Of a DNA stretch of 64,000 nucleotides, positions 4,832 through 61,504 are shown one piece after another (position 1 is the stretch's first letter; the number at the start of each line of letters is the position of its first letter). The stretch is from assembly GCF_026571515.1 (NCBI RefSeq), contig NW_026860675.1, positions 1 through 64,000 on the forward strand, given 5' to 3'. This stretch comes from Ruditapes philippinarum (Eukaryota). A model generated the notes under the pieces. The model did not search any database, was not told the DNA's origin, and was given only the letters and a program-made list of their open reading frames with translations. The position numbers were made by a program, and so were the translations under genes.

Positions 4832-7800
4832 TAATGATAATAATAATAATAATAAAAAATTTCTTTATTTAAAGAAGGTTACACATTAAGAACATACAAT
4901 AACAATCATATATATCTTATTTCCAATGTGGCCTTCTGAAGTAGAAAACAACAACAACAACAACAACAGGACATGCATAGGTAGAAAAATGAATGTATAA
5001 TATGTAATGTTTAGAATAATACAACTCATATACTTTCGACAGACACTCAACAATTTGTTTAAACATATACGTATATTTCATCATTCGTTCGTTCGTTCAT
5101 TCGTTCGTTCATATATTTATTCATTCATTCATTCATTCACTCACTCACTCATTCATTCATATGAACATCAAGATATGCTTTGTATTTTTCTTTAAAACAT
5201 TTAAGGTTATTAACATTACGAATATTTAAAGGTATATTGTTCCAAATGTTCATGCCATAATAAGAAAATGTGTCTTTAATATAATTTGTTTTAGGTCTTG
5301 TCCATAATACAATATCTTTTCGTGACCTAGATCTTAAGTTATATATTTTGTTGTCGGATAAAGTCATCAGTTCTGTCATATAAGTCGGTGCCATGTTATT
5401 TAAAGTTTTAAAAACAAGCACCGCCGTGTGGTATTTACATCTGTCAAGGAACGGTAACCAATTAAGAGTTTCGAATAGATTTATTGACGGAGATCTTTGA
5501 GGTTGCTGTAAAATGATTTTAGCAATTCGTTTTTGTAACTTACAAACATTATGTATGTAGTTTGTGTTTCCATTACCCCATATTATACAACAATAGTCCA
5601 TAATGGGCAATACATGTATATATGCATTGTAAAACAATAATTTCATATCAAAGTGCAAAAAATACGATATTTTTTTCAATAAGGCAATTTTTCCGTTAAG
5701 TTTTTTACAAACATTGTCAATTTGCAAGTGCCATTTTAAGTTGTTATCTATGCAAATACCCAAGACTTTTTGATCAGTTACATTTTCAAGAGCTATTTCA
5801 TTTATCTTAAGAATTAATTTTCTCATAATATTTACTTTTTGTCTTGTTCCTATTACCATACATTTTGATTTATCTGGATTTAAGGCCATATTATTTATTT
5901 TGCACCATTTGTCAATGTTATTTAAATGATCTTGAAGTTTTATTTCTACTTTTGATATATTTTCTCCGGACTCATAAAGAGTAGAATCGTCTGCGTATAA
6001 ATCAATTTTCATATCATTACCAATGAAAGCTATGTCATTTATGTATATTAGAAATAATAAAGGTCCTAATATTGAGCCTTGTGGAACACCGGAAATTATT
6101 TTCATTGGCTGAGATTGAAGATTACCTATCTTAACCAGTTGTATTCTGTTAGAAAGATATGACTTAAAAAACTTAACGGCATTTTCAGAAAAATGATAAA
6201 GTTTAAGTTTATGCAAAAGTATTTCATGGTCAACCAAATCAATATTGGTGTGATATAATCTCCACAATATTTGATGATGTTTGGTCCAATTCCATCTAAT
6301 CCTGTAGATTTTTTAATATTCAGTTTTTCAATAATAAGTTTTACTTCAAACGGTGTAATTAATTCAATATTAAATTCATGATATATTAGCTTTTGGTCTA
6401 AAGTTTCTTTCAATTTTGAAAAATTTGTATTTGAAAACTTTGTTTTATGTATGACATTCGAGATATTGACAAAATACTTGTTTAATTCATTTATAATATT
6501 TACAGTTCCGTAAATTTCTTTATTACCTGTCACTAGTCTGTCTGGCATTGTAATACAACCTTTTTTATTTAGATTTGAAACGTCCTTTAAAATTTTCCAT
6601 AAAAATGCCGGGTCTTTGTTATTTTTAATAGCATTGTTAAAGAAATCTCTTTTACTTTTTTTAATCATTGATGTTATTTTATTTCTGAGCAATTTGTATT
6701 GTTCATGTTTCCCTACTTTATGATAGTAATCGCGTTCATGTATAAGATATTTTATCTCATCAGTAAACCATTCCGGGCGTTTTTCTTTTATTGGTGCATG
6801 CTTTTTCAAGATAGTATTTAAAATGGAGTAAAATAAGCTAAGGGATTCATTCGGATTAATTATGTGCTCGACTAATTCAAGATCGGATAAAGCAAGGTCT
6901 ACCTGAAAATCAATTTCATTGAAGTTTTTAAAACATCTATATTTAATCGAATTATGTTCATTAATCAATCGGGTACATGCTTTCGTTGATCTTGAAATAC
7001 CTATCGGATAATGATCACTTAATGAGGTATCAGAAACAAACGATTCAATAATATATCTGCTACTGTTTGTATAAACATGATCTATAATTTTTTGGGTACG
7101 TTTTGTTATCCTAGTAGGATCTGTGATAAGTTGTTTCAAACCATATTTCGTTATCAAATCACCCCATTTTGTATTGTCATATTTTTTCTTTTTATTCATT
7201 GGATAAAAGTTTATATTGACATCTCCTAGAATATGATATTCTATATTTGATATATCTATTATACTTAGTTGTTTTTCATAATCGTCAATCCAAGATTGGT
7301 GTACATTTGGTGGGCGATATATAAAATTTAAAAGAAAAGGTTTGCAATTTGGGTAAATAATTTCCAACCAAACAGATTCTAATTCGTCCGTTTCTATATC
7401 GTAACGGCGCCGATATGGCACCTTGTCAGCAATATATATTACAACTCCCCCGCCTTTGTGACAACTTTTACGGTCCTTTCTTTCGTGTGTGAAATTGTTA
7501 ATATTTAATTCATCGTCTGTTTTATCATCACCAAGAAATGTCTCAGTAAAGCCGAAAATATCTGGCGAATTTAATTTTTTTAATAGATTGTATTTTATTT
7601 CGTCTATTTTCGGCATTAAGTGATTAACGTTAAGGTGTGCAATATGTAACCTCGTTTTTCAAACTTAGAATTGAACAATTTATTATCTGGAAAATTTGAT
7701 TTATGGAGCGTAACATTATTTAGTACTTTGCAATTATATTCATCATTTCCGTATATATTGTATGGCACTGATTGTTCAAAAGTAACAATTTGATTACCAG

Positions 7801-8753
7801 ATGCAATAGTGTCTATAAATTTTCGTTCTTTTACTATCAAATCGATAATTTTTCGCGTATTTAAACATATGTGTAAAATATCAATTGTGGAATACAACAT
7901 AAAATCGTAACATACATTATAAATTGATATATTAGTTTGAAAATCGCTATAAAGATCTTGTTTTAATATAGATTTATAAGTAGTTACCTCATTATGAATA
8001 CAATTGTATGTTTCAAATTGTTGATTTTCACATAAGCCAATGATTTTTGGTGATTTAGAATTGTTTAAAATATGTTTAATTTCATCCAACTTTGGTAATA
8101 AATGATGTATATTGAGACTGGCAATAAAAAGTCCCACTCCATCAAAAAGTAATGAGTTGGCTTCTGCATTTTGTCTTACTGCGTGTTGTTTAGTTGTTTT
8201 ACATACATGTGTGTGATAACTTATTAATAAATTGTTTTTTAGATGATTCTCAGAACGAAAGCGCCCCTCATGAATACATTTAGTACATGGCGTTTCTAAC
8301 AATAGCTCGGAACTATTTATGACATTCGAAGTTTTATCTTTGCAATTGATATTTTCATCTAAAACATTTGTTATATATATCGAAGGGTTTGTGATAATAA
8401 AAGATCGATTCGCACATAAGCATTTATCCAATACTATTTTGCATTTAATACATGTCTCATTATTATTAGTAAGTGAGATTTGAATTTTCGAATTAGGTTC
8501 ATTAGAACCGATTGATATATTATTTTGAAAATCGCTATAGAGATCTTGTCTGAATATAGATTTATAAGTAGTTACCTTATTATAAATACAATTGTATATT
8601 TCAAATTGCTGATTTTCAAAATTTGAGTGCCTGTCGGATATTTCCTAATTCCTATATATTCTAAAGCTATTCTGTCCATAATAATAATTTTCACTTCCGG
8701 GTCTTCTGTCGTTCCAAGTCTGTCTCCCCCCATAATGCATTCCCCCATAATGC
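4832..8753 (-). mobile_element. CR1-group (L2/Crack-like) non-LTR retrotransposon, internally deleted, 8-bp TSD ATCTATAA
   Basis: Absent from copies B and C (empty site aatatctataatcaacttac near 25730). TSD at 4824-4831 and 8754-8761. The 3' end has AATAAA plus a (ATT)n tail and a (TGAA)n tract in the 3' UTR. Encodes APE and RT. Confidence 0.92.
5149..8431 (-). pseudogene. LINE ORF2 (APE endonuclease + reverse transcriptase), frameshifted and with an RT deletion
   Basis: APE motifs: LHIAHLNVNHLMPKIDE, FGFTETFL, GGGVVIYI, IYRPPN, ILGDVN, IDHVY, SDHYPI. RT motifs: GVPQGSILGPLLFLIYIND, LYADDS. There is a 1-nt frameshift near 7650. RT motifs 1-3 are missing at ~6243, where GDYITPI is fused to DLVDHEILL. 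Confidence 0.9.
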
Positions 8754-28727: not shown

Positions 28728-29736
28728 TTATAACTTTAACTTTTTTGTAATTGACAATCGACTGTCTAATGAATCAACAATATAACCGTCCTTAGCTATA
28801 TCAGTTTTCCAACGGCCATGTCTCTTTAAACATCTATCAGACACACCTGAGTTAGCGGCCACTGTAACTCCACTAGCTCTCAAAGAATGTGTACCTAAAT
28901 TTAAATTTGGTGCTACTAACTTTAATTTAGACAAAATGCATTCCCTAACTCGTGTGTAAGACAACTTTTTATTACTTTTTATAAGCGCCGATACCCCCTT
29001 TGACCTAAAACATGGCCTAAACAAAAATTCATTACAGGTTACGTCAAGACAAGCTGCCCTCATATATTTTTTAAGCATATTAAAAGGACATGCATTAGTA
29101 GTACCCTTACAAATCGGAACAGATTTTCCTTGCCTATACACATCAGTTTTGCTCTTACGAATGTTTATCACTAAGTGATCATCATTGAATGTTATATCTG
29201 AACAAATTAAAGAATTCAGTTCGTTGAAACGTAAAAACCCAGCGAAACCTAAAAGAATAATTGACAGATCTCTTAAGGTTACCACGTCGCTGGAATCTGA
29301 AAACATATCACATAATGTTTGTAACATTTCCGAATCTATTGTATCTTCCTTTTTAACAGGTTCATAACATTCTCGTTTACTTGTTTCCAATAAATGTTTA
29401 ACCATTGAATTCGTAGTAGGATCCACATAATCATGCAAAGAATGCATCCATTTAATAGAATACACGGTAGAAGAAATAACACCGTACGACTTTCCGTGAT
29501 CTAACATGTTTGTTAAATACATTGCTACAACTAAAGATGAAGCTGGTTTGGAAACAAAACCATTTTTGACACAATATTCTTCGAAATGTTTGAAATAGTT
29601 CATATATTTCTGTCTAGTAGAAACTGCCTGGGTTGTACAATATAACCTGCCATGTGATCAATAACTGTTTGATGTTTTTGAATGTCCACTCCTGCGTTGT
29701 TCATCATGCTCCTGATTGAAGGTATTAAGTCAACAC
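28728..29736 (-). CDS. Tyrosine recombinase (YR/integrase) of the DIRS-type element; main ORF 28728..29603, N-terminus frameshifted near 29628
   Basis: Catalytic residues FLRFNEL (R), KSKTD (K), HSLR (H-x-x-R), HGRW, DGY (Y); upstream acceptor ttttcgattatag|g at 29737/29736. Confidence 0.93.
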
Positions 29737-29834
29737 CTATAATCGAAAAGGCAAATATTATAAACTTCATAAAATATTGTAAAATAGAATACAGTACATG
29801 TCTCATTAAAATATATCTATATTGGCACTCCAAA

Positions 29835-31920
29835 CTAAAACCTGATCTTGAGTGCCAGCATACAAAACGGCAATGGTGTGTGTGCAAACACGCCATTATT
29901 ACCTTTACCAGTACGTATTATTCCATTTTTTGGTAAAACCTCTACATCTCTTATGTAAGTTTTAAAATTACATTTTGTATCAAACAAACAAGGCCAAAAA
30001 GCTGAAGATTTCCACTTTGGTATAATTAATGTGCAACTTGCATTTTCGTTTACAATTTTGTTTATACACTCTACTATTAGCCGAGGCGGCGGAACTAACC
30101 AATTATTATCATTTTTCCAGGACTGATCCAAAGCATTTATAGCTTCCGTTCCTGGTACCCACCACTTAGAGTTAAACCTTTCACAATGAGTGTTATAATG
30201 AGTAGAAAACCTATCTATTGTGTGTATTCCCCAAATACAATCAAAATATCTGAACCAACGATCTGATATTGACCAATCATCAGAATCAAGACATCTACTC
30301 AAATAATCTGATATCTGATTATTTTCTCTGGGTATCCATTCCGGGCTAATATGGATATTATTTTCTTCACAAAAATCATTGAAACCTAAAGCAATTTTTT
30401 GAAGCTCTGCGTTAACACTGCCGTTCAAAAGAATCGATTTTACATTTTGATTATCAGAAAAAACTTTCACATTTTTGTTTTTGAGAAATTGTGCCTGACT
30501 TCTCACAACCCTATTCACTGCCTCAACCTCACGCCAAGAAGAACTTTTAATCTGTTCTTCAAAAAGCCAACTTCCGGTGACTTTCGTATCTATATCTATA
30601 CTTTTCTTTGTATTATCTAGCATACATTTTTCCACTTCCGGGGAAACAGCTGAAGAAATCGGTGATTTCAACATAACATTCGACATGCAATCCACTTCCG
30701 GGGATAACAATGTTCCACTCATTTGAATATTAGAATGTAATTGAGCTTCATTGCTCGGAAAATATAGGTAACCACCATAACCAGATCCACTGGCATCGCA
30801 AAATACGTGTATATCGTACACTTTCATTTCAGACATGTATTTACCTGATCCATTCAAATTTCTTACATTTTCTTTCCAGTACATAATTTCATGTATGGCT
30901 GATTCGCTCACTAAAACTGGCGAGTCCCAACTAGCCCTAGAGATGATACATTTATACATCTCTCTCGTTCTCAATCTCACTATGTTACCAAAGACAAATT
31001 GAAGAGAAATCAGACGTCCAACCAAAGACGCTAACACACGGACTGGTAGAACACTACACTTGTCACAACTTATCTGATATAGTACAGACTCGATTGATTT
31101 TTCTATGACAGAAATTCGTTCTCCTGTAACAAATATCTTATTCTGAAAAAAATCTAATATAAAACCTAACCATGTTACTTTTTGACAGGGAAACCAATGA
31201 CACTTTTCTTCCGCCAACAAAAAACCAAATTCAATCAGTGTACTTTTTACAAATGCACTACTTTCTAATGCTTCTCGGAAATTAATATGACCACCGATGC
31301 CATCGTCAAGATACATTATCACCTTATGACCTAATGACCTTAAGTACATGACCAATACTCGGACAGTTTTAGAAAAAATATGCCCTGCGCTAGCTATTCC
31401 AAATGGAAGTGAATTAAACACAAAATAAGTCTGTTGACCATTATAGATCCATGAAAAACCTAAATATTTCCTATGAGCTTGAAAAATATCGATGTGATGA
31501 TAAGCTCCTTTCAAATCAAAAGTAAAAGCAAAAACCCCAGCACTAAATAGAGACTGAGCGACACGAACATCTTCAAACTTGATTTTGAATAGATGCAAAA
31601 ACTGATTTACATGCCTACAATCTAAAACCAACCTTGCTTTTCCGGCCTTATTTATAAGCCACAGTCAACGGATTTACAACTTCCGGCACGTGATCTACTA
31701 CCGAAATAACATGTTTTTCTAGTAAACACTCTATTTCCGTCGTAACAAAAGACGGATTGTCTCTAGCGGGCTTATTATTTTTAAGCATTACTTTACTAGG
31801 AATATTTCTAAATGGCAATTTGTAACCATTTTCTATAACTTCTACAATGAAAGAATCGCCATTGATAGATCGCCATTTGCTAGCATGCGCCTTCAATCTT
31901 CCTACTGGCGATATTACACA
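29835..31920 (-). CDS. pol: reverse transcriptase + RNase H + methyltransferase-like domain (frameshift near 31650)
   Basis: RT: VGRLK, VNPLTV, RLVLDCRHVN, DLKGAYHH, LPFGIASA, YLDDG. RNase H: FCDASGSGYGG, REVEAV, SDNQNV, WIPRENNQISDYLSR. MT-like: DDWS..HTIDRFS..RFNSKWW..NWLVPP..IPKW. Confidence 0.92.
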
Positions 31921-32017
31921 CTTAAGTTTTTCTTTTTTGGACTCAAAATGGTCTGCTACTGATACTGAGCATTAACTGTTCGGCTGAGAACAACATCCAT
32001 GATTCACAGAAGAAACA

Positions 32018-32539
32018 TTAAGACTTAAACATTTTTTTAGGAAATACAACGATTTCATTTTCTGAATGATTTTGGTTCGAATCGCAACTAATTGCCTCAA
32101 TATTTATTTGTTCCCTGTAATTGTGATTCAATGAATCACTGTCTAGCATATCGCAATGTTTATTAAATAAACAAAATGTACTCATCTTATTATTCAAATT
32201 TGTAGTATTTGCTGGACATTCTTTTCTCCAGTGACCCGGCTTTCCACAGTAAAAAACATAAGCCTGGTTTCTGTACACCAAATTGCTGCGAAGTGGATTG
32301 ACTTGTAGCTCGTGCAGGTACACTCCTGGTGTAAGGCTTGGTTCTAAACTTTTTAGACTTCTTATTTTTCTCAGCTTTGAGCTTCCTGTCAGCCCTGACT
32401 TCAGCTTTATACATTTTCTTTTCATCATCGCTGTCGTCTGCTAGAGGATTTTGTTCATACTCATGAACTACTCTCCACCCCAATTCACTAGCATCCGCCA
32501 ACTGTATCATCTTTTGTCGGTGTGACAAAATATCCAAGG
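32018..32539 (-). pseudogene. gag exon 2 with CCHC zinc knuckle (frameshift in a T6 run near 32252)
   Basis: RQKMIQLADASELGWRVVHEYEQNPLADDSDDEKK; LCF/YCGKPGHWRKEC is restored by removing one T. Confidence 0.85.
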
Positions 32540-54507: not shown

Positions 54508-54645
54508 ATGCTTCTAAGTTCAGTGAATTTTGTTGCTAAAACGAAGGCAGTGAAATACAAGGATAAACCAGAAAAGAAAAATGAGAAGAAAATCGAGGAA
54601 GAGAAAGAACTAACAGCTAAAACCTGCAAGAAATGTCAGGAAGAG
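54508..54645 (+). CDS. Exon 1 of IL-1-like gene (MLLSSVNFVAK...TCKKCQEE)
   Basis: ATG in aaaATG context, 46 open codons rich in Lys/Glu, phase-0 donor gtaggt. Confidence 0.75.
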
Positions 54646-57600
54646 GTAGGTCTTTTATATATATTTATGTTCTTGGTTAATGCTTAAAAAGGTTGCAAAG
54701 ACTTTCGTCGATACAAGAAAATTTCCATTGCGATGTCATCCTCTGTTTAGAAAAGTGCAATTATATTTCATGTCAGATTCAAACAACTTCCCCACAACCT
54801 TGTAGACCAGAAAAGAATATGTGATTTCATGTCAAATTCAAATAACTTCCCCACAACCATGTATAACAAAAAATGTGCTGAATTTGAAGGATGCTAAATG
54901 CTTCCTGCAAAACAAATATAGAAAAAGAATTTAAAAATTTAATATATGTCCCCCTCAAATGAATTAGATAGTACAATTTATTCACTTTAAACAAATCTTA
55001 TCCATAATCATTAAACAAAACTACCATTGGTTCTTAGGGAAATAGAAGTTGGAAAAATGAATGAAGTAATAGAATCATCTGTTGAATCATTTTTTTCTTT
55101 AACTAAAGATGTTTTCAATCACATTTAAAATATTTAGGACCAATTATATCATCATTATTGTATATTGTATATAATGTACACAATAAGCATATTTTCAAAT
55201 TATTGCCTTGCATTGCATGGAAGTGGCATAAGCACGTTTGTTTGCACACCAGATAACATTTTGTCATTAAAATGAATATGGCTAGGTACGAGCGACTTGT
55301 TAAAATACATTTTTAAAAGAATAAATTCTATTAAATTGCACCTAATACTTTACTTTCACTTAAAGCGAAATTAAAACAAACGTGTTTACCTCACAGGGCA
55401 GTGTACTAATTTCATAATATCGAAAATAGCAACTAGAAATGGGACCACTTTTCAGAGCACATTGTTTTAAGACCCCCTACAGTTGCCAACACGTGTTAAT
55501 AAGTAAAAATAAGAAAACATATCCTATTTCAGGAAGGGGGGTTTACTATGAAATTGAATATATACAAAGATAGTATTACATACATACCTGTTTAAACCCA
55601 ACACCTTGGCATATCAAGTTCTGTCAGCTTTGTTAACTAATGTAGCGGAAAAGCGATTTGTGGTTTATCTAATTAGTCGGGTCTCGTGCGACAATACATT
55701 AATGAGCCATCCATAGCAGGTGGAATGTGCCGCGTTCCCTCATGCTGCGGGAAATGCTAGCACGTACACTAAACCCCCCTCTAAGACGAAAATACCGTAT
55801 GGTAAAGAAAAATAGAATGTGACAACATTTCGACCCCATACTGCTTTGTTTTAACTGATATAAGGTTACGATAATATCTTAACGAATATCAAATTGCAAA
55901 ACAGAAAGCCCTACGCTAGGTGACGGTCACCTACAACGGTGCATTTATCGAATAATTAACATAGTGTAACACCTGTAATGATATCTTTTGAAATCCGACA
56001 TTGATATAATTTAATAAATTTATAGATGATTTGTTAACATTGTCCTTATGAACGCTGCTGAATTTTTAATTGACGTGCTTTGAATAGTAAAGCATGCGTC
56101 TGTGGGGAATTTACTCTGATACAATCACTTTTTTTAAAATCATAATTGTTCAACATTTATCGTAATAAACTGATATATTACTGACAACGCATGGAACTTC
56201 TGTAGATTTTATATAAAGTCCAAGATAGCATCTGACTTATAAGAATAAATTGTTAAATGTATTCAAATTCGTTATTAATGCAATGTGATGTATGGCAATT
56301 GATTGCATAATGCAATTAATCATTAATGGCAATTTGTTATCAATGACAATCTAAAATGAAATAAGAAATATATATATTCGATTCGTTATGTCAACGATTT
56401 TGATTTTATGCTTCGATTTAAATTTTACTATGACAAACATGGGTTTTCTTTATACATTTACAGATTGAGGAGGAAGGCAAAATATTCCGTTTCCCAACTA
56501 CGTCATCATACAATTCAGGGATCAGCTTTAGTTCCTCAGGTAAGCGAAGAAATTATGTTTCTAACAGAGATTAATTCATGCTGTAATGCCCATCCTGTTT
56601 TGTAACAACATCAGCATCTAACAGAGGCTGTATGATATAAAGTGTATATGTAGGCCGTCGCAGAAATAACAACATTAAATGAAATGTCATGCTGGTATCC
56701 AGCCAGACAGCAAATGGGTTTTAAAAGGTGTAAATATTTTATATAATTGTGCGAATTTAATAGGCATGATAAACCACTCCTACTTGCTGAAACATAATAA
56801 TACTACAGTACATAATGACCTTTGTTTTTTTCTCAAGGTCATTCAAATCTGTATAAATAGGAAATAAAAATGTTGTCTTTTTTCTGGTTTTTTCTTGTTT
56901 GTGTTCTTTTATAATAAAAAAACATCGTTTTCTATGAATAGCCCATTGTCGTCATAGAGCGAATCTCAATTTTCCAGAAATAAAAGCTCACCATTTACGT
57001 CGGCGTGGCGCGTGTGTATTTACAATCTAATACCGAATTTAATTGAATTGAAGTCTCTAAAGTGATGACAAAATGAATTTCAGGAAACCTGTTTACATCA
57101 AATTCTGCTATATTTTTTTTAGAAATTACCCTCCTACTAGGGAATATATAATAACTGTATTACCGTGGTAACGAAAATGTAACATTCAATGTTTTTCTGT
57201 AATATAATATCATTATATACGCGTGCGAAAACTATAATTCTTAAGAATTAAGGATAATCATTTTCAAGGAGCAACATGCCATATTGTCTGTGTTTACATT
57301 TATCCTTATTAATTCGCTTCTTTAAGAGCAACATTACAAAGGTTGATACTGACGTATTTATAGTAAACAGATATTAAATTTATCTCTGCAGGTTACAACA
57401 GCGAAGAAAACCTTGACTTTAGCCAGTTTCCTGGAGATCGTGTCAACATAGCAACGGGGGACGACCTCTGTTTGACCGTGGAACAATTCTTTTACACCAT
57501 TGGCCTACGTGACAAAGCAAAGTCGGACAGCACATGTAAGTTTACGATATATTTTACGACATTCTTTACGACATATTCTAGAATAATTATTTTTTTCTTT

Positions 57601-58965
57601 ATCGAGCTACATCTCCTCTGATAACTTCCAGCGGCTGTAACAACAATTTATTAATGGTAATTGTAGCTTTTAATTCTTTTTTTGCTGACATCAAATGAAA
57701 AATTCGTATATATTGTCAACAACATTTACTGAAACTTTTTCAGGCATATTTCGGAAGAAAGTTCTAGACCGCCAACCATTACCCAATGGCTGCATGGAAA
57801 CGGTTGTTTTTGCACTAGACTGTGACCAGGAATTCTACTTAACAACTTCTAAAAATAGAGATTTGGAACTGAATGTAAGTAACCAGACATCATTCAATAA
57901 AACACTTTAATAGTCTAATTAACCCTAAAAATGAGGTTAAAAGAGCAGTATATGTCCCCATTCCACCATTAAACCATTGTATTGTACACAAACCTTACCA
58001 ATCATCTATTCAAATGATTGCAGACGACATCAGCAGACGGCAGTAAAACCGCTAATCAATTCACTCTTGTTCGTCTTAATTTACCTGACAGCAAAGTTCC
58101 AATCAAGTTCAACCCAAATCAGTTCTTTGAAGGGTAATTGTCGGCATAGAATCAGATTTTCATAGACTTCAGGTGAAATTCACCTGGTTGAGAGGATTTC
58201 AAGCGGTTTTAAATTACAAAATGGAACTTAGAACTAAGCACAGATCAATAATTGTATCGTCATAATATCTGCTTACTGAAGAAGGGAAAAATGAAACAAC
58301 AAAGTATTAACTTTCCTGAGAAATTCAAGGTCGTTTTGGTTTCTGAAAGATGAAATTGTGCAATAAAATGTTAACAAATCTTATGAAACAGAAAATGCGA
58401 AATATCAAATTAAAAAAAAAATTAATTCTTTGTTTTTTATTTCTTTTTAGATTTATCAATGTTCTGCATTTCATATTTTCAGTTTTCTTCTGTTGACCCA
58501 TGCCTAGATAGTCCAGATGAAAGAACGTTCTTGGTATACTTCACGGGTATTGGCCATTGCTTCATCCAGCCGAAACTCCACAAAAACATGTATCTTCACC
58601 ACATCGATCAGGCATTGAGCATTCAGCCATTAGACTTAAATTGGAGGTGCCCGGAAGAATACTTTTTTAACTTCAGCGCTGTTCCCGAGCCGTATGTCAA
58701 ACCTAAAAAGGACCCGAAAGTGTGTACGCATATACAGGAAATTCAAAAAGAAATCGCAAGCACAAATAAAGGAACAACGAAGGAAACCTCGACGCAAGAA
58801 CTCGTGAAAACAATTACCGCGGAGGTTCTAAGACATAACATTCGGTCTGAAATTCCGGATTTTCTTCCATCCAAAAAATCCCGAAATGGACGGCGTTTAT
58901 TGGCAGGATTATTATTTGGGTGCTTCAGTGCAAAGAGCAATAAATTGACTACAACTGAAGTTTGA
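54508..58965 (+). CDS. Five-exon gene, 323 aa: leaderless protein with charged N-terminal pro-region, putative IL-1-family-like beta-trefoil core and basic/Cys C-terminal tail. join(54508..54645,56464..56539,57392..57535,57744..57874,58483..58965)
   Basis: All four introns are GT..AG with pyrimidine tracts (gag|gtaggt, tttacag|att, cag|gtaagc, ctgcag|gt, cat|gtaagt, tttcag|gc, aat|gtaagt, tttcag|ttt). Phases 0,1,1,0 join into a stop-free 972-nt CDS. The core has RVNIATGDDLCLTV..CIFRKKVL..TVVFALDCDQEFYLTT..LELNFSSVDP..DERTFLVY..CFIQPKLHKNMYLH..EYFFNF. Confidence 0.85.
56464..56539 (+). CDS. Exon 2 of IL-1-like gene (IEEEGKIFRFPTTSSYNSGISFSSS)
   Basis: Acceptor tttacag, donor gtaagc, phases 0 and 1 fit both neighbouring exons. 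Confidence 0.8.
57392..57535 (+). CDS. Exon 3 of IL-1-like gene (GYNSEENLDFSQ...KSDST)
   Basis: Acceptor tctctgcag, donor gtaagt, 144 nt, phases 1 and 1. Confidence 0.85.
57744..57874 (+). CDS. Exon 4 of IL-1-like gene (CIFRKKVL...RDLELN)
   Basis: Acceptor ctttttcag, donor gtaagt, 131 nt, phases 1 and 0; lies within ORF 57695..57910. Confidence 0.85.
58483..58965 (+). CDS. Terminal exon 5 of IL-1-like gene (FSSVDPCLD...KLTTTEV*)
   Basis: Acceptor tattttcag, 160 codons to TGA; matches ORF 58459..58965. Confidence 0.85.
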   Translation, partial: FSSVDPCLDSPDERTFLVYFTGIGHCFIQPKLHKNMYLHHIDQALSIQPLDLNWRCPEEYFFNFSAVPEPYVKPKKDPKVCTHIQEIQKEIASTNKGTTKETSTQELVKTITAEVLRHNIRSEIPDFLPSKKSRNGRRLLAGLLFGCFSAKSNKLTTTEV

Positions 58966-61504
58966 TGCTAAATAGACAGAGTAGTTCAAATCTAATAGTG
59001 CTAAATATCCGTCCATGATTTCATTTTTGTTCATGATTTATCATAAGGTGCTTATTATTTTCTTATACATTTTTGGTCAAACGAAATCCAAGATATAGTG
59101 TTAACGAGTTATTAAAGACTTTGTTAAACATGTGCTAGTATCTTAGTGCCTCAAATATAGTAACAATTCAAATCCAATGTCTCACTAGGGGTTGGGTGGC
59201 GGGGGGGGGGGACCTCATATGGGGGTTTTAAGGAGAAAGTGTTTTCTCGGGTGTTTAAGTGAAATGTTGATTATGTTATATTTAATGTTATTTATTTACA
59301 ATCAAGAGGATAATGTTATATTTGTATTTATCAAAATCGCGACATCTTTGCTTCTGTTTGTGAAGGTCCTGTTTGTTATTGTACTCAACTGTTTATTTGA
59401 CCTTGACACTATCGGTGTTAGGGGCGTTGTTATTTTTTGTCATAGTATTTTTTTTTTGGTGTTTATATGTCGTACTCGACCACAGCACGTTTTGTGTTAA
59501 CGTATAGATTATTACAATGTTTGTTAGAAATCTTTGTCACGAGAAAGGGGACTGTTTTGTCACATTGAAAAAAAATATATATACATGAACTGAATCATTT
59601 GGTCTTACATTGGCACCAATTGAAATCTTGCTTTTTCTCAGCCTTCATTTTGGACACTAGAACTTCAGCTTTTTTCTCTTTTTTTCAAGATTTTATTTAA
59701 AAAAGGGGGACAAACAGTACTCTTTTTCGTGACCTTTTGTATAATCTTTTTCTTATTTGTATCCATTTTGACGAGAGTGTTTCTTATGGGCTCCATGTAT
59801 ATTGTCTTAAGAGTTTCTGTTAGTTAAAATATTTACGTTTGTACAAGTCAACGTCCGCGTTTTTTGTGGGAATCAGATAAATATAGGAATAGGTTTTAGT
59901 AACTGTTATATTTATAGTATGTACAGTATATGTATTATTTATTTGTTGGTTGCAATTGTCAACTGTAAAACGTCCGCGTTTTTGTGGTAAACCATTATGT
60001 ACATATTTAGGAAAATAGTTAAGTTTTCTTGATGTATGATTTAAGCCATATATCTTCCAGGATAGGTTGATAAATAAAACTGTTTATATATAGGAGAGAG
60101 GTGGCGATTGAACGGCATTTCAAAGGCCTACTCTCCTTTCATTTATGTGGTTATGTCACGTCAGATGAATTATTGAGAACAAAAGATAAACCGTATAAGA
60201 CACGTGAATGTGTAAAACATATATATTTATATCATAAACAAAATGATTAGTTTGCTGTCTTTTATAAAGTCACATTTTCTGAATACCTTATTCTTCGCGT
60301 GACTTTTAATTTCCTCGCGTGCGCAACTTCAATCTCATTAGATAATATCTAATCAAGCGTTCCGGGAATCAGGGTGACGGAAACGCTTGTCAGTGTTTCA
60401 TTTACCAGACGACATTTTAGAGAGATTCATGACATGAAGTTTGGTCATTTGATTGGTCAAACATGCAATATAACGAGTGTTCTAATTATGGTAACACTGT
60501 ATTATGTGTTCTAAAATTGCTAAACAGAAAATTTCGGAAAGTATGTATTATTTTAATGCATAGAAGTGGTGGCGGTCTAATATTCTAAAACAAGACATTT
60601 CCTTACGGGAATAAAAGCCGTTTGTTTGTAGGAATTAACCGTAAGATTTAATATCTAATCATAACAAAATACATGTTGGCAATGTATAATGTACTTGGTA
60701 GGGACTAATATTTTCCCATAGAACCATTTACTACAAGATTTTATTGTTAAGAGTTTTTGCTTTAATAGAGGAAATGATTTCGTAGCTACTTAAGAAAATT
60801 TTGATAATTTCGCACGAATTTCGTGAATAGTAGGTTGTGTGTATGCATACATGGTGAATTATCTTTTGTTTTAGATTTTAAGTTATTGTGCTCGTGCGGT
60901 ATGAGAATTTAATATAGTTTCGTTTAGACATTGTCAAAATCAGTGGCACTTGAAAACGCACGAGAGAACGAAATTTCGTTGATATAGTTCTAGCTTTCAA
61001 AGGAGTAAAATTTCGCATCTAAACAAGATACTGTGATATATTTATGCAAAAAATGCATTTTTGATATTTTGTGCAATATAAGACTTCATATATCTGTTAT
61101 CATTCCATGTTCATCGTTACCATAGCAACGATATCTGTTGTATATGATCACAAATTATCGATCTTTTCCTCAAGCAATTTATTTAAAGATATATTGAATA
61201 GCATTATTTCATTAGCGTACACATTTTTCAGATTAAAAACGCTTGGGGATTTTTCTTCTTCTCTTTTTTCTAGAACATTTTTGTTAATTATATCATTTTA
61301 AGCTAGACAGATTTTCTGTTGAGGTGTTATATTTCAGAGCTCAGCTGTATTGTCCACATTCTTGATTCGTGATGAAATAAAATGCCATCAGAACAGCTGA
61401 TGTACTATTATTGCATTTGACATTTTATAAGAACAACCCTGAATTTTTGCTGACAAAAATTATACTATAGTAGTATGTTCAAATATACAGTATGTTGTGA
61501 TCAA

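Follow-up and report, generated by a model that had tools for sequence, protein, structure and literature searches.

A conserved bivalve beta-trefoil family in the Manila clam with a plausible relationship to interleukin-1

The IL-1 family of vertebrates, which includes IL-18, IL-33 and IL-1beta, consists mostly of leaderless proteins in which an N-terminal pro-region precedes a 12-strand beta-trefoil of ~150 aa. The original prediction for the locus described here treated these cytokines as restricted to vertebrates. That view is outdated, as IL-1 homologues (IL-1anc) are reported across Eumetazoa and in fish, with the bivalves Pecten maximus and Crassostrea virginica included (Fontenla-Iglesias et al., Nat Ecol Evol 2026; PMC13736523). 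The same prediction had allowed that invertebrate IL-1-like proteins might already be reported, as this 2026 publication confirms, and the clam gene can no longer be presented as the first IL-1 of an invertebrate. Most invertebrate IL-1anc proteins carry a PDZ domain at their N-terminus and a small subset have none; the trefoil is encoded by 3-5 exons, and the phases of its two central introns are conserved and were used as a family criterion (PMC13736523). The authors of the survey state that their own strategy may miss very divergent members (PMC13736523), and a PDZ-less bivalve branch, if there is one, may therefore have been missed.

Other trefoils also have to be considered. The FGF family, including the FHFs (FGF11-14), has an asymmetric cytokine-type trefoil, and some of its members are leaderless and intracellular. 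Hisactophilin, fascin/FRG1, MytiLec and SeviL are cytosolic beta-trefoils without a leader peptide, and hisactophilin is lipid-tethered to the membrane.

The protein encoded by LOC132713009 of the Manila clam, Ruditapes philippinarum, resembles the vertebrate IL-1 family in the size of its leaderless trefoil, in its N-terminal pro-region and in an aromatic residue at the FES position of strand 9. In contrast to that family, it has no significant sequence match, F-I-Q-P replaces FES, and its relatives have a conserved N-terminal motif, a ~90-aa C-terminal tail with a Cys/basic motif, no conserved caspase site, and one lobe that is conserved far beyond the IL-1 norm. With IL-1anc it shares a leaderless trefoil recognised by structure and not by sequence, several genes per bivalve species, and trefoil exons in which the phases of the two central introns are conserved. 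However, no PDZ domain was found in the bivalve family (0/35 members and 0/25 database matches), and whereas the IL-1anc trefoil lies at the C-terminal end, that of the clam is central, ending at ~233 of 323 residues and followed by a disordered tail and a conserved C-terminal motif. The asymmetric trefoil and a phase-0 intron after strand 7 are shared with the FGF family, but this bivalve family lacks both a PF00167 match and the CxFxE motif, and its domain and middle exon are longer. Unlike hisactophilin, fascin/FRG1 and the bivalve lectins, it has no Pfam match, no threefold repeats and a different flanking architecture. Overall, we consider the assignment of this family to IL-1 plausible.

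An intact five-exon gene and its bivalve relatives

Five exons on the + strand (54508-58965) join into a 972-nt CDS of 323 aa with zero internal stops. The product is identical over 323/323 residues (100% identity) to the RefSeq entry 'uncharacterized protein LOC132713009 [Ruditapes philippinarum]' (database protein P0054), with which the whole-protein searches were run. The five GT-AG exons proposed from the DNA letters are reproduced exactly, and their attribution to a probable mollusc agrees with the species of the record. The gene model is not new, since RefSeq already has the protein. The gene is hidden from the ORF track, as had been pointed out, because only its last exon shows as a long ORF (58459-58965, 168 aa). 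All four introns are GT...AG with a polypyrimidine tract, and their phases are 0, 1, 1 and 0.

All features given here are on the + strand. Coding exon 1 (54508..54645) runs from the start codon through aa 1-46 to a donor GT at 54646, in phase 0. It carries the conserved N-terminal motif MLLSSVNFVAK (54508-54540), next to which is a K/E-rich stretch, as well as CKKC (54625-54636), and it lies inside the match of the family profile to the clam's own genome. Coding exon 2 (56464..56539, 76 nt) encodes a disordered linker (aa 47-71 plus 1 nt) and ends at a phase-1 donor. An SSGYNS motif starts at 56533 and runs on into exon 3, so that in the alignment of relatives junction 2 is bridged by a conserved SSGY motif. 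The linker end and trefoil strands 1-3 are encoded by coding exon 3 (57392..57535, 144 nt), with the trefoil beginning at about 57421; the phase-1 intron that follows interrupts the Cys120 codon immediately ahead of strand 4. Strands 4-7 fall in coding exon 4 (57744..57874, 131 nt), after which a phase-0 intron follows Asn163, where strand 7 ends. Coding exon 5 (58483..58965) contributes aa 164-323 plus the stop, with strands 8-12 extending to about 58692 and the disordered tail thereafter. Within it are FIQP of strand 9 (58561-58572), HHID (58597-58608), RCPEEYFF (58645-58668) and, in the C-terminal tail, a conserved motif, RRLLAGLLFGCFSA (58891-58932), and a terminal T-E-V (58954-58962).

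We recovered 35 or more full-length family members from Veneridae, Mactridae, Myidae, Dreissenidae, Unionidae, Pteriidae and Ostreidae. Three family genes (paralogues), LOC132713009 among them, are present in the R. philippinarum genome. The family is unnamed and, judging from the sequences recovered, appears so far to be confined to bivalves. Its accessions do not occur in the main text of PMC13736523, and a literature search found no paper naming its LOC numbers. Full-length relatives are colinear with the clam protein over all four junctions; several are carried on 1-3 kb contigs and must therefore be spliced transcripts. Given the intact frame and the conserved and colinear orthologues and paralogues, we rejected a pseudogene or annotation artefact and regard LOC132713009 as a real protein-coding gene that is intact in the Manila clam.

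Outside the trefoil, members share the MLLSSVNFV N-terminal motif, a CxxC helix, the ~90-aa tail and a C-terminal LFxGCF motif with basic residues, the Cys/basic motif being found in 34/35. Inside it, the third lobe is near-invariant (Q192, P193, H202, H203, D205, R218, P220, E221 and E222). Strand 9 (189-193) reads C-F-I-Q-P in the clam protein and [FLI]-[ILV]-Q-P in the family consensus, where Q192 is conserved in at least 90% and P193 is invariant. Conservation is thus concentrated in one trefoil lobe and both termini, over more than three bivalve orders. So strong a pattern resembles a housekeeping interaction inside the cell more than it does a rapidly evolving cytokine.

The protein contains no TM segment (maximum 19-residue hydropathy 0.82) and, as predicted, inspection of the N-terminus (MLLSSVNFVAK, then the K/E-rich stretch) reveals no canonical signal peptide. 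A caspase-like site, ENLD80, was rejected as a conserved cleavage site, being common to the Mercenaria orthologue only.

Predicted fold, sequence profiles and intron positions

The AlphaFold2 model of the clam protein is a 12-strand beta-trefoil with pLDDT >90 over residues ~82-233 and disordered ends. Models of two family members, P0054 and P0014, both have pLDDT >90 and 12 strands. The core (residues ~82-233) is modelled as an asymmetric 'cytokine' (IL-1/FGF) type trefoil. IL-1beta residues 1..153 map on residues 82..232 of the clam model with 142 aligned, in agreement with the original prediction, which had paired residues ~86-227 with mature IL-1beta by eye and called a 12-strand beta-trefoil. 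For IL-18, 138/155 residues are aligned. Across the structures compared with the clam model, IL-1 chains align over 136-143 residues and FGF over 123-130, and lectins and FGF together span 119-133. Comparison of lobe against lobe with hhalign gave a probability of at most 0.2%, with no internal repeats, and QxW motifs are absent.

For two family members, the natural structures that match best are those of IL-18 and IL-33. In Foldseek, the best natural match of the clam protein is IL-33, and the best 12 matches of the oyster member are all IL-18 or IL-33. A Foldseek comparison of IL-1 with FGF and lectins had been proposed as a check; the lead of IL-18 and IL-33 in it is slight, roughly tenfold in E-value, and amounts to less than 1 Z unit by structural score. 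Also scoring within one Z unit of IL-1 are HA33/ricin-type lectins, CBM42, FGF-derived Symfoils, FGF and fascin, and in a structure search of a representative set lectins rank ahead; fascin and SeviL are also among the structural matches. The neighbours in a protein-language-model atlas are fascin/FRG1/FGF/ricin clusters and not IL-1, with scores of at most 0.91 and few shared features that make them leads only. Considering size, topology and gene structure together, the modelled clam trefoil appears to sit closest to IL-18, IL-33 and IL-1beta.

An exon-by-exon Pfam search of the clam gene gave nothing useful. With the Pfam IL-1 models IL1 (PF00340) and IL33_bt (PF15095), 0/35 family members scored above the curated threshold, and the two models had zero matches in the whole clam genome. 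The best IL-1-type score came from a single member of the 35, P0019 against IL33_bt (E=0.004, 17.5 bits versus a cut-off of 27). PF00167 (FGF) retrieved two true FGF genes from the clam genome, the LOC132713009 locus not among them, and in the 35 members it found no match, nor is the CxFxE core motif present. Fascin (PF06268) and FRG1 (PF06229) gave nothing at E<=1, and the lectin models had no match, in the same 35 members. One member showed a marginal local resemblance to CBM42 (E=0.22) over the lobe motif IQ....GYYL.H. A family-profile HMMER search of PDB sequences returned low-complexity N-terminal matches only. Strand 9, with F-I-Q, departs from the (F/L)ES motif of the PROSITE IL-1 signature and agrees with it at the aromatic position alone.

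Two introns interrupt the trefoil, one of phase 1 ahead of strand 4 and one of phase 0 following strand 7. Both are kept in 3/3 clam paralogues, in which the exon corresponding to exon 4 measures 131, 131 and 125 nt. IL-1beta genes have intron phases II,0,I,I,0 and encode the 12 strands in their last three exons (PMC4880838). The clam trefoil likewise occupies the last three exons, with phases 1, 1 and 0, and agrees with IL-1 genes. Putative equivalence at the level of residues was judged by range mapping on the structure alignment together with the exon sizes of human IL1B, 165 and 131 nt. The pattern points to IL-1/FGF and not to IL-1 alone, because at least the phase-0 intron recurs in a clam FGF gene, at the equivalent place ahead of the CxFxE strand. 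The middle exon of vertebrate FGFs is 104 nt, from which phases 1 and 0 would follow; a motif scan within 10 kb upstream found no middle exon for the clam FGF gene.

A candidate IL-1 branch and its rivals

Taken as a whole, the observations are best explained by a branch of the IL-1 superfamily that is very divergent and PDZ-less, a lipid-tethered cytosolic protein from which the trefoil is released, although we hold this reading tentatively, as possible and not quite probable. The IL-1-like ligand of the original prediction survives in part. In its favour are the end-to-end alignment with IL-18, IL-33 and IL-1beta, with IL-18 and IL-33 the top natural matches, the intron phases of the trefoil, and the lack of a signal peptide and of any lectin-like repeat. 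Against it stand the tied structural scores, Pfam scores below threshold, FIQ in place of FES, an architecture unlike that of IL-1anc in having no PDZ domain, and the phase-0 intron of clam FGF.

Since it has no leader peptide, the clam protein would be made in the cytosol. Its trefoil is flanked by a predicted disordered N-terminal pro-region and C-terminal tail, with conserved motifs at both termini. The C-terminal hydrophobic-Gly-Cys-Phe motif and the basic residues around it would most likely tether the protein to the inner face of the membrane, by acylation of its Cys (Cys310) plus charge, and the near-invariant third lobe is a probable partner-binding face. Damage or proteolysis would then free the trefoil to act, as with leaderless IL-1 cytokines. 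A bolder form of this reading posits a second bivalve lineage of the IL-1 superfamily beside the PDZ-containing IL-1anc, in which a leaderless trefoil held at the membrane by an acylated Cys/polybasic motif serves as a tethered, degradation-controlled alarmin with a release unlike caspase-1 maturation. Its heteroconch clade would add a phosphodegron-like [ST]SGYxS motif and an S/T-E-V end resembling a PDZ ligand. We regard this combination as unlikely.

Much of the conservation would also suit a lipid-anchored beta-trefoil adaptor that works inside the cell and is no cytokine, placed at the cytosolic membrane face and binding a conserved partner via its third lobe, on the model of the intracellular FGF-homologous factors, fascin/FRG1 and myristoylated hisactophilin. 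Both termini and one lobe are strongly conserved over more than three bivalve orders, 34/35 members have the C-terminal Cys/basic motif, and signal peptide, TM segment and conserved caspase site are all absent; the nearest language-model clusters are fascin/FRG1/FGF, and fascin and FHF are among the structural matches. Yet the Fascin and FRG1 Pfam models have no match, the atlas scores (at most 0.91, few shared features) carry little weight, and IL-1 fits the domain length and end-to-end coverage better, so that an adaptor seems to us somewhat unlikely. Localisation alone cannot separate the two readings, since leaderless IL-1 cytokines are likewise cytosolic before release.

Two further rivals fare worse. 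The weak local CBM42 resemblance of one member (E=0.22) hints at a cytosolic carbohydrate-binding lectin, whether of the leaderless bivalve MytiLec/SeviL type or a ricin-B/HA33/CBM42 module. The three lobes are mutually dissimilar and without QxW motifs, conservation is concentrated in one of them, the lectin Pfam models give no match, the domain measures ~150 aa versus ~125-130 aa, and the intron pattern is the IL-1/FGF one, all of which make a lectin quite improbable. A divergent FGF-family derivative, leaderless and FGF1/2- or FHF-like, instead of an IL-1 relative, could account for the FGF and FGF-derived Symfoil structures among the top matches, for the equivalent phase-0 intron before the CxFxE strand of the clam FGF gene and, given the 104-nt middle exon of vertebrate FGFs, for both phases. 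It is nevertheless very improbable: PF00167 picks the two true FGF genes of the clam and not LOC132713009, none of the 35 members has an FGF match or CxFxE, the middle exon measures 131 or 125 nt in a domain of ~150 aa, and IL-1 chains align over more residues (136-143) than FGF (123-130).

Should the family be truly related to IL-1, bivalves would possess a PDZ-less and possibly membrane-tethered IL-1 branch. With its three genes, its clear domain and a single Cys to mutate, such a branch would make the storage and release of leaderless cytokines before vertebrates tractable in clams and oysters of commercial importance. Otherwise, what remains is an unnamed protein family of bivalves, well conserved in sequence and defined in fold, whose clear motifs merit a family entry.

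Within the 64-kb window, the whole stretch of DNA analysed, the long ORFs are transposon genes and none is a candidate Ig-TIR receptor. The first AATAAA/ATTAAA-type hexamer past the stop of LOC132713009, a candidate polyadenylation signal by pattern match only, lies at 59111..59116 on the + strand.

A five-exon gene hidden from the ORF track

The five-exon gene of the original prediction, said to encode 323 residues and to be hidden from the ORF track, was confirmed. A local script check placed its coding exons at 54508-54645, 56464-56539, 57392-57535, 57744-57874 and 58483-58965 on the forward strand. Joined, they form a 972-nt CDS (323 aa) whose one stop codon is terminal. The introns, of phases 0, 1, 1 and 0, open with GT(A/G)AG-like donors and close with a pyrimidine-rich tract and CAG. 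The mechanical ORF list includes just one of the five exons, the last, as an ORF of 168 aa, which leaves the gene invisible to the ORF track. Transposon genes account for the window's long ORFs. A non-LTR (LINE-like) retrotransposon with three overlapping or adjacent ORFs (5149-8431, reverse strand) encodes an apurinic-type endonuclease (Exo_endo_phos) together with a reverse transcriptase (RVT_1), and a DIRS-like retroelement (28728-32428, reverse strand) carries a tyrosine recombinase (Phage_integrase family), RT/RNase H and a gag ORF with a zinc knuckle. Neither a receptor-like nor an immune gene was seen beside the five-exon gene within the window.

Searches were run exon by exon. Exon 5 retrieved full-length relatives, and a profile search retrieved the RefSeq protein P0054, which matches the joined model at 100% identity (323/323 residues, local BLAST) and was the reference for whole-protein analyses. 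This makes the window DNA of the Manila clam (Ruditapes philippinarum), whose RefSeq annotation already contains the gene model, unnamed ('uncharacterized protein LOC132713009'). Indirect support for the junctions, from the relatives, is good: 35 full-length relatives align colinearly over all four, junctions 1, 3 and 4 are free of indels, and junction 2 is bridged by a conserved S-S-G-Y motif. Many relatives are unbroken ORFs of ~300 aa on contigs of 1-3 kb; we infer that these are spliced transcripts, because introns are present in all three clam genes.

A bivalve-only family with conserved termini

Named members of the family come from Ruditapes, Mercenaria (2), Mactra (2), Mya (3), Dreissena, Potamilus (2), Pinctada, Crassostrea virginica, Saccostrea and Ostrea, and every one is annotated as 'uncharacterized' or 'hypothetical'. 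Sequence and profile database searches returned no named match outside bivalves, and a literature search found no mention of the family's LOC numbers. The family tree has three main groups: one of pteriomorphs (oysters and pearl oyster), one with Mya LOC128218962 among its members, and a heteroconch one in which Mercenaria LOC123554494 is the sister of the window gene.

In the clam genome the family numbers exactly three: the window gene plus two paralogues ~30 kb apart on contig C7113. The first (421164-423230, forward strand; positions 6365-8430 of extracted locus L008) is orthologous to Mercenaria LOC123554332 and has four coding exons, lacking the upstream phase-1 intron (intron 2) of the window gene. 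The second (388839-394862, reverse strand; L007) has an additional phase-1 intron within the HKG|YY codons, and its middle exon is 125 nt long. The tblastn and HMM matches for both paralogues show an in-frame stop at the match edges.

The members share a conserved N-terminus, M-[LI]-L-S-S-V-N-F-V, followed by a CxxC helix, a variable linker, a core domain with the motifs PDERxF, IQPxxHKGYYLHHxD and RKLExNxRPPEEYFF, and a variable tail. At the C-terminus, 34 of the 35 full-length members have a hydrophobic-G-C-F-[GS] motif with basic flanks. The domain's final third is where invariant residues cluster (P193, H202, H203, D205, R218, P220 and E221). Across the exon 2/3 junction, 12 of the 35, all in the heteroconch clade, carry [ST]-S-G-Y-x-S (SSGYNS at residues 70-75 of the clam protein; 56533-56539 and 57392-57402), which we take to resemble a beta-TrCP phosphodegron (DSGxxS/TSGxxS).

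Fold, introns and sequence signatures of the trefoil

The predicted 12-strand beta-trefoil was borne out by modelling. Based on an alignment of 35 sequences, AlphaFold2 gave a pLDDT >90 over residues ~82-233 of the clam protein, with 12 strands and disordered ends; a model of the oyster member P0014 had the same outcome. All structural searches with these models returned beta-trefoils and nothing else. In Foldseek searches of the PDB, the best natural match of the clam protein was IL-33 (4kc3_A, E 2.2e-6), among FGF-derived Symfoils, CBM42, IL-18, fascin and FGF, and the best 12 matches of P0014 were all IL-18 or IL-33. The models thus suggest a consistent but thin structural preference for the IL-1 family; an absence of preference is neither clearly seen nor clearly contradicted. 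Coverage was likewise fuller for IL-1 chains (136-143 aligned residues) than for lectins and FGF (119-133). Language-model neighbours fall in fascin, FRG1, FGF and ricin clusters (score <=0.91) and serve as leads only.

The window gene's last three exons encode strands 1-3, 4-7 and 8-12, with a phase-1 intron cutting the Cys120 codon just before strand 4 and a phase-0 intron after Asn163, where strand 7 ends. When model residues 82-232 are mapped by range onto IL-1beta 1-153, these central introns correspond to IL-1beta positions of about 39-40 and 82-84. Given exons of 165 and 131 nt, the human IL1B introns sit at mature residues 40 and 83/84, which would make the penultimate IL1B exon 131 nt long, as clam exon 4 is. 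All three clam paralogues have the two central introns, the exon between them measuring 131, 131 and 125 nt. In IL-1beta genes the introns follow the phases II, 0, I, I, 0, and the last three exons encode all 12 strands (PMC4880838). Two central trefoil introns of conserved phase were the criterion applied to the published invertebrate homologues (PMC13736523).

Two bona fide FGF-domain loci of the clam lie at C7649:475533-475673 (forward strand; L004:1501-1641) and C10826:75583-75813 (reverse strand; L005). The last exon of L004 starts with a phase-0 acceptor just before the C-x-F-x-E strand, the equivalent place; a motif scan found no upstream exons within 10 kb. Because this FGF gene shares the phase-0 intron, the intron pattern indicates a trefoil of the IL-1/FGF kind rather than singling out IL-1. 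The three lobes of the family trefoil show no similarity to each other and lack the QxW motif, which speaks against ricin- or MytiLec-type lectins and fits the asymmetric IL-1/FGF kind.

No Pfam family reached threshold in the 35 members, and PF00340 and PF15095 had no match in the clam genome. One match was suggestive: within residues 170-247 of P0019 (CHS0354_021411), a divergent member from Potamilus streckersoni, IL33_bt scored 17.5 bits (E 0.004) where the cut-off is 27. That protein also weakly matches CBM42 there (bacterial 3kmv_A, E 0.22), sharing the pattern IQ....GYY[LI].H, which indicates how generic trefoil-lobe motifs are. The likeness first noticed in strands 9/10 (FIQP...YLHH against FES...WYIST) is accordingly one that trefoil lobes have in common, and it is weak evidence, since P0019 matches CBM42 about as weakly as IL33_bt.

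Relation to published invertebrate IL-1s and possible function

Invertebrate IL-1s are already published: IL-1 homologues termed IL-1anc have been described across Eumetazoa (Fontenla-Iglesias et al., Nat Ecol Evol 2026; preprint 2025; PMC13736523), with several genes in each bivalve species examined (three in Pecten maximus, two in C. virginica). Typically, IL-1anc proteins start with a PDZ domain, end with a trefoil, carry an (F/L)ES motif and lack a signal peptide; the authors note that very divergent members were possibly missed (PMC13736523). A PDZ-less subset of IL-1anc entries exists as well and could include the family described here. In contrast to the typical form, no member of this bivalve family has a PDZ domain, the trefoil is central, and the termini carry motifs of their own. 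HMMER searches linked the family to no PDZ protein. The IL-1 interpretation is partly supported: fold and gene structure fit it, but it is matched neither by the sequence signatures nor by the architecture of IL-1anc.

As predicted, the window protein is leaderless, and it lacks a TM segment. In both models a folded trefoil lies between disordered arms, and conservation covers both termini and one trefoil lobe. The hydrophobic-GCF motif with its basic flanks could act as a membrane tether, through Cys acylation plus polybasic contacts, and the invariant third lobe may be a partner-binding face. Our best, still tentative, reading is an IL-1-like alarmin that would be stored and then freed by damage or proteolysis. 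A caspase-like site directly before the trefoil (ENLD80) is common to the window protein and its Mercenaria orthologue only. The alternative, a purely intracellular adaptor, seems to us somewhat less likely.

The window protein ends in T-E-V (residues 321-323; 58954-58962), and its closest orthologues end in S/T-E-V, as class I PDZ-binding C-termini do. The ending is not conserved across the whole family; it is curious in that the published IL-1anc proteins carry a PDZ domain.
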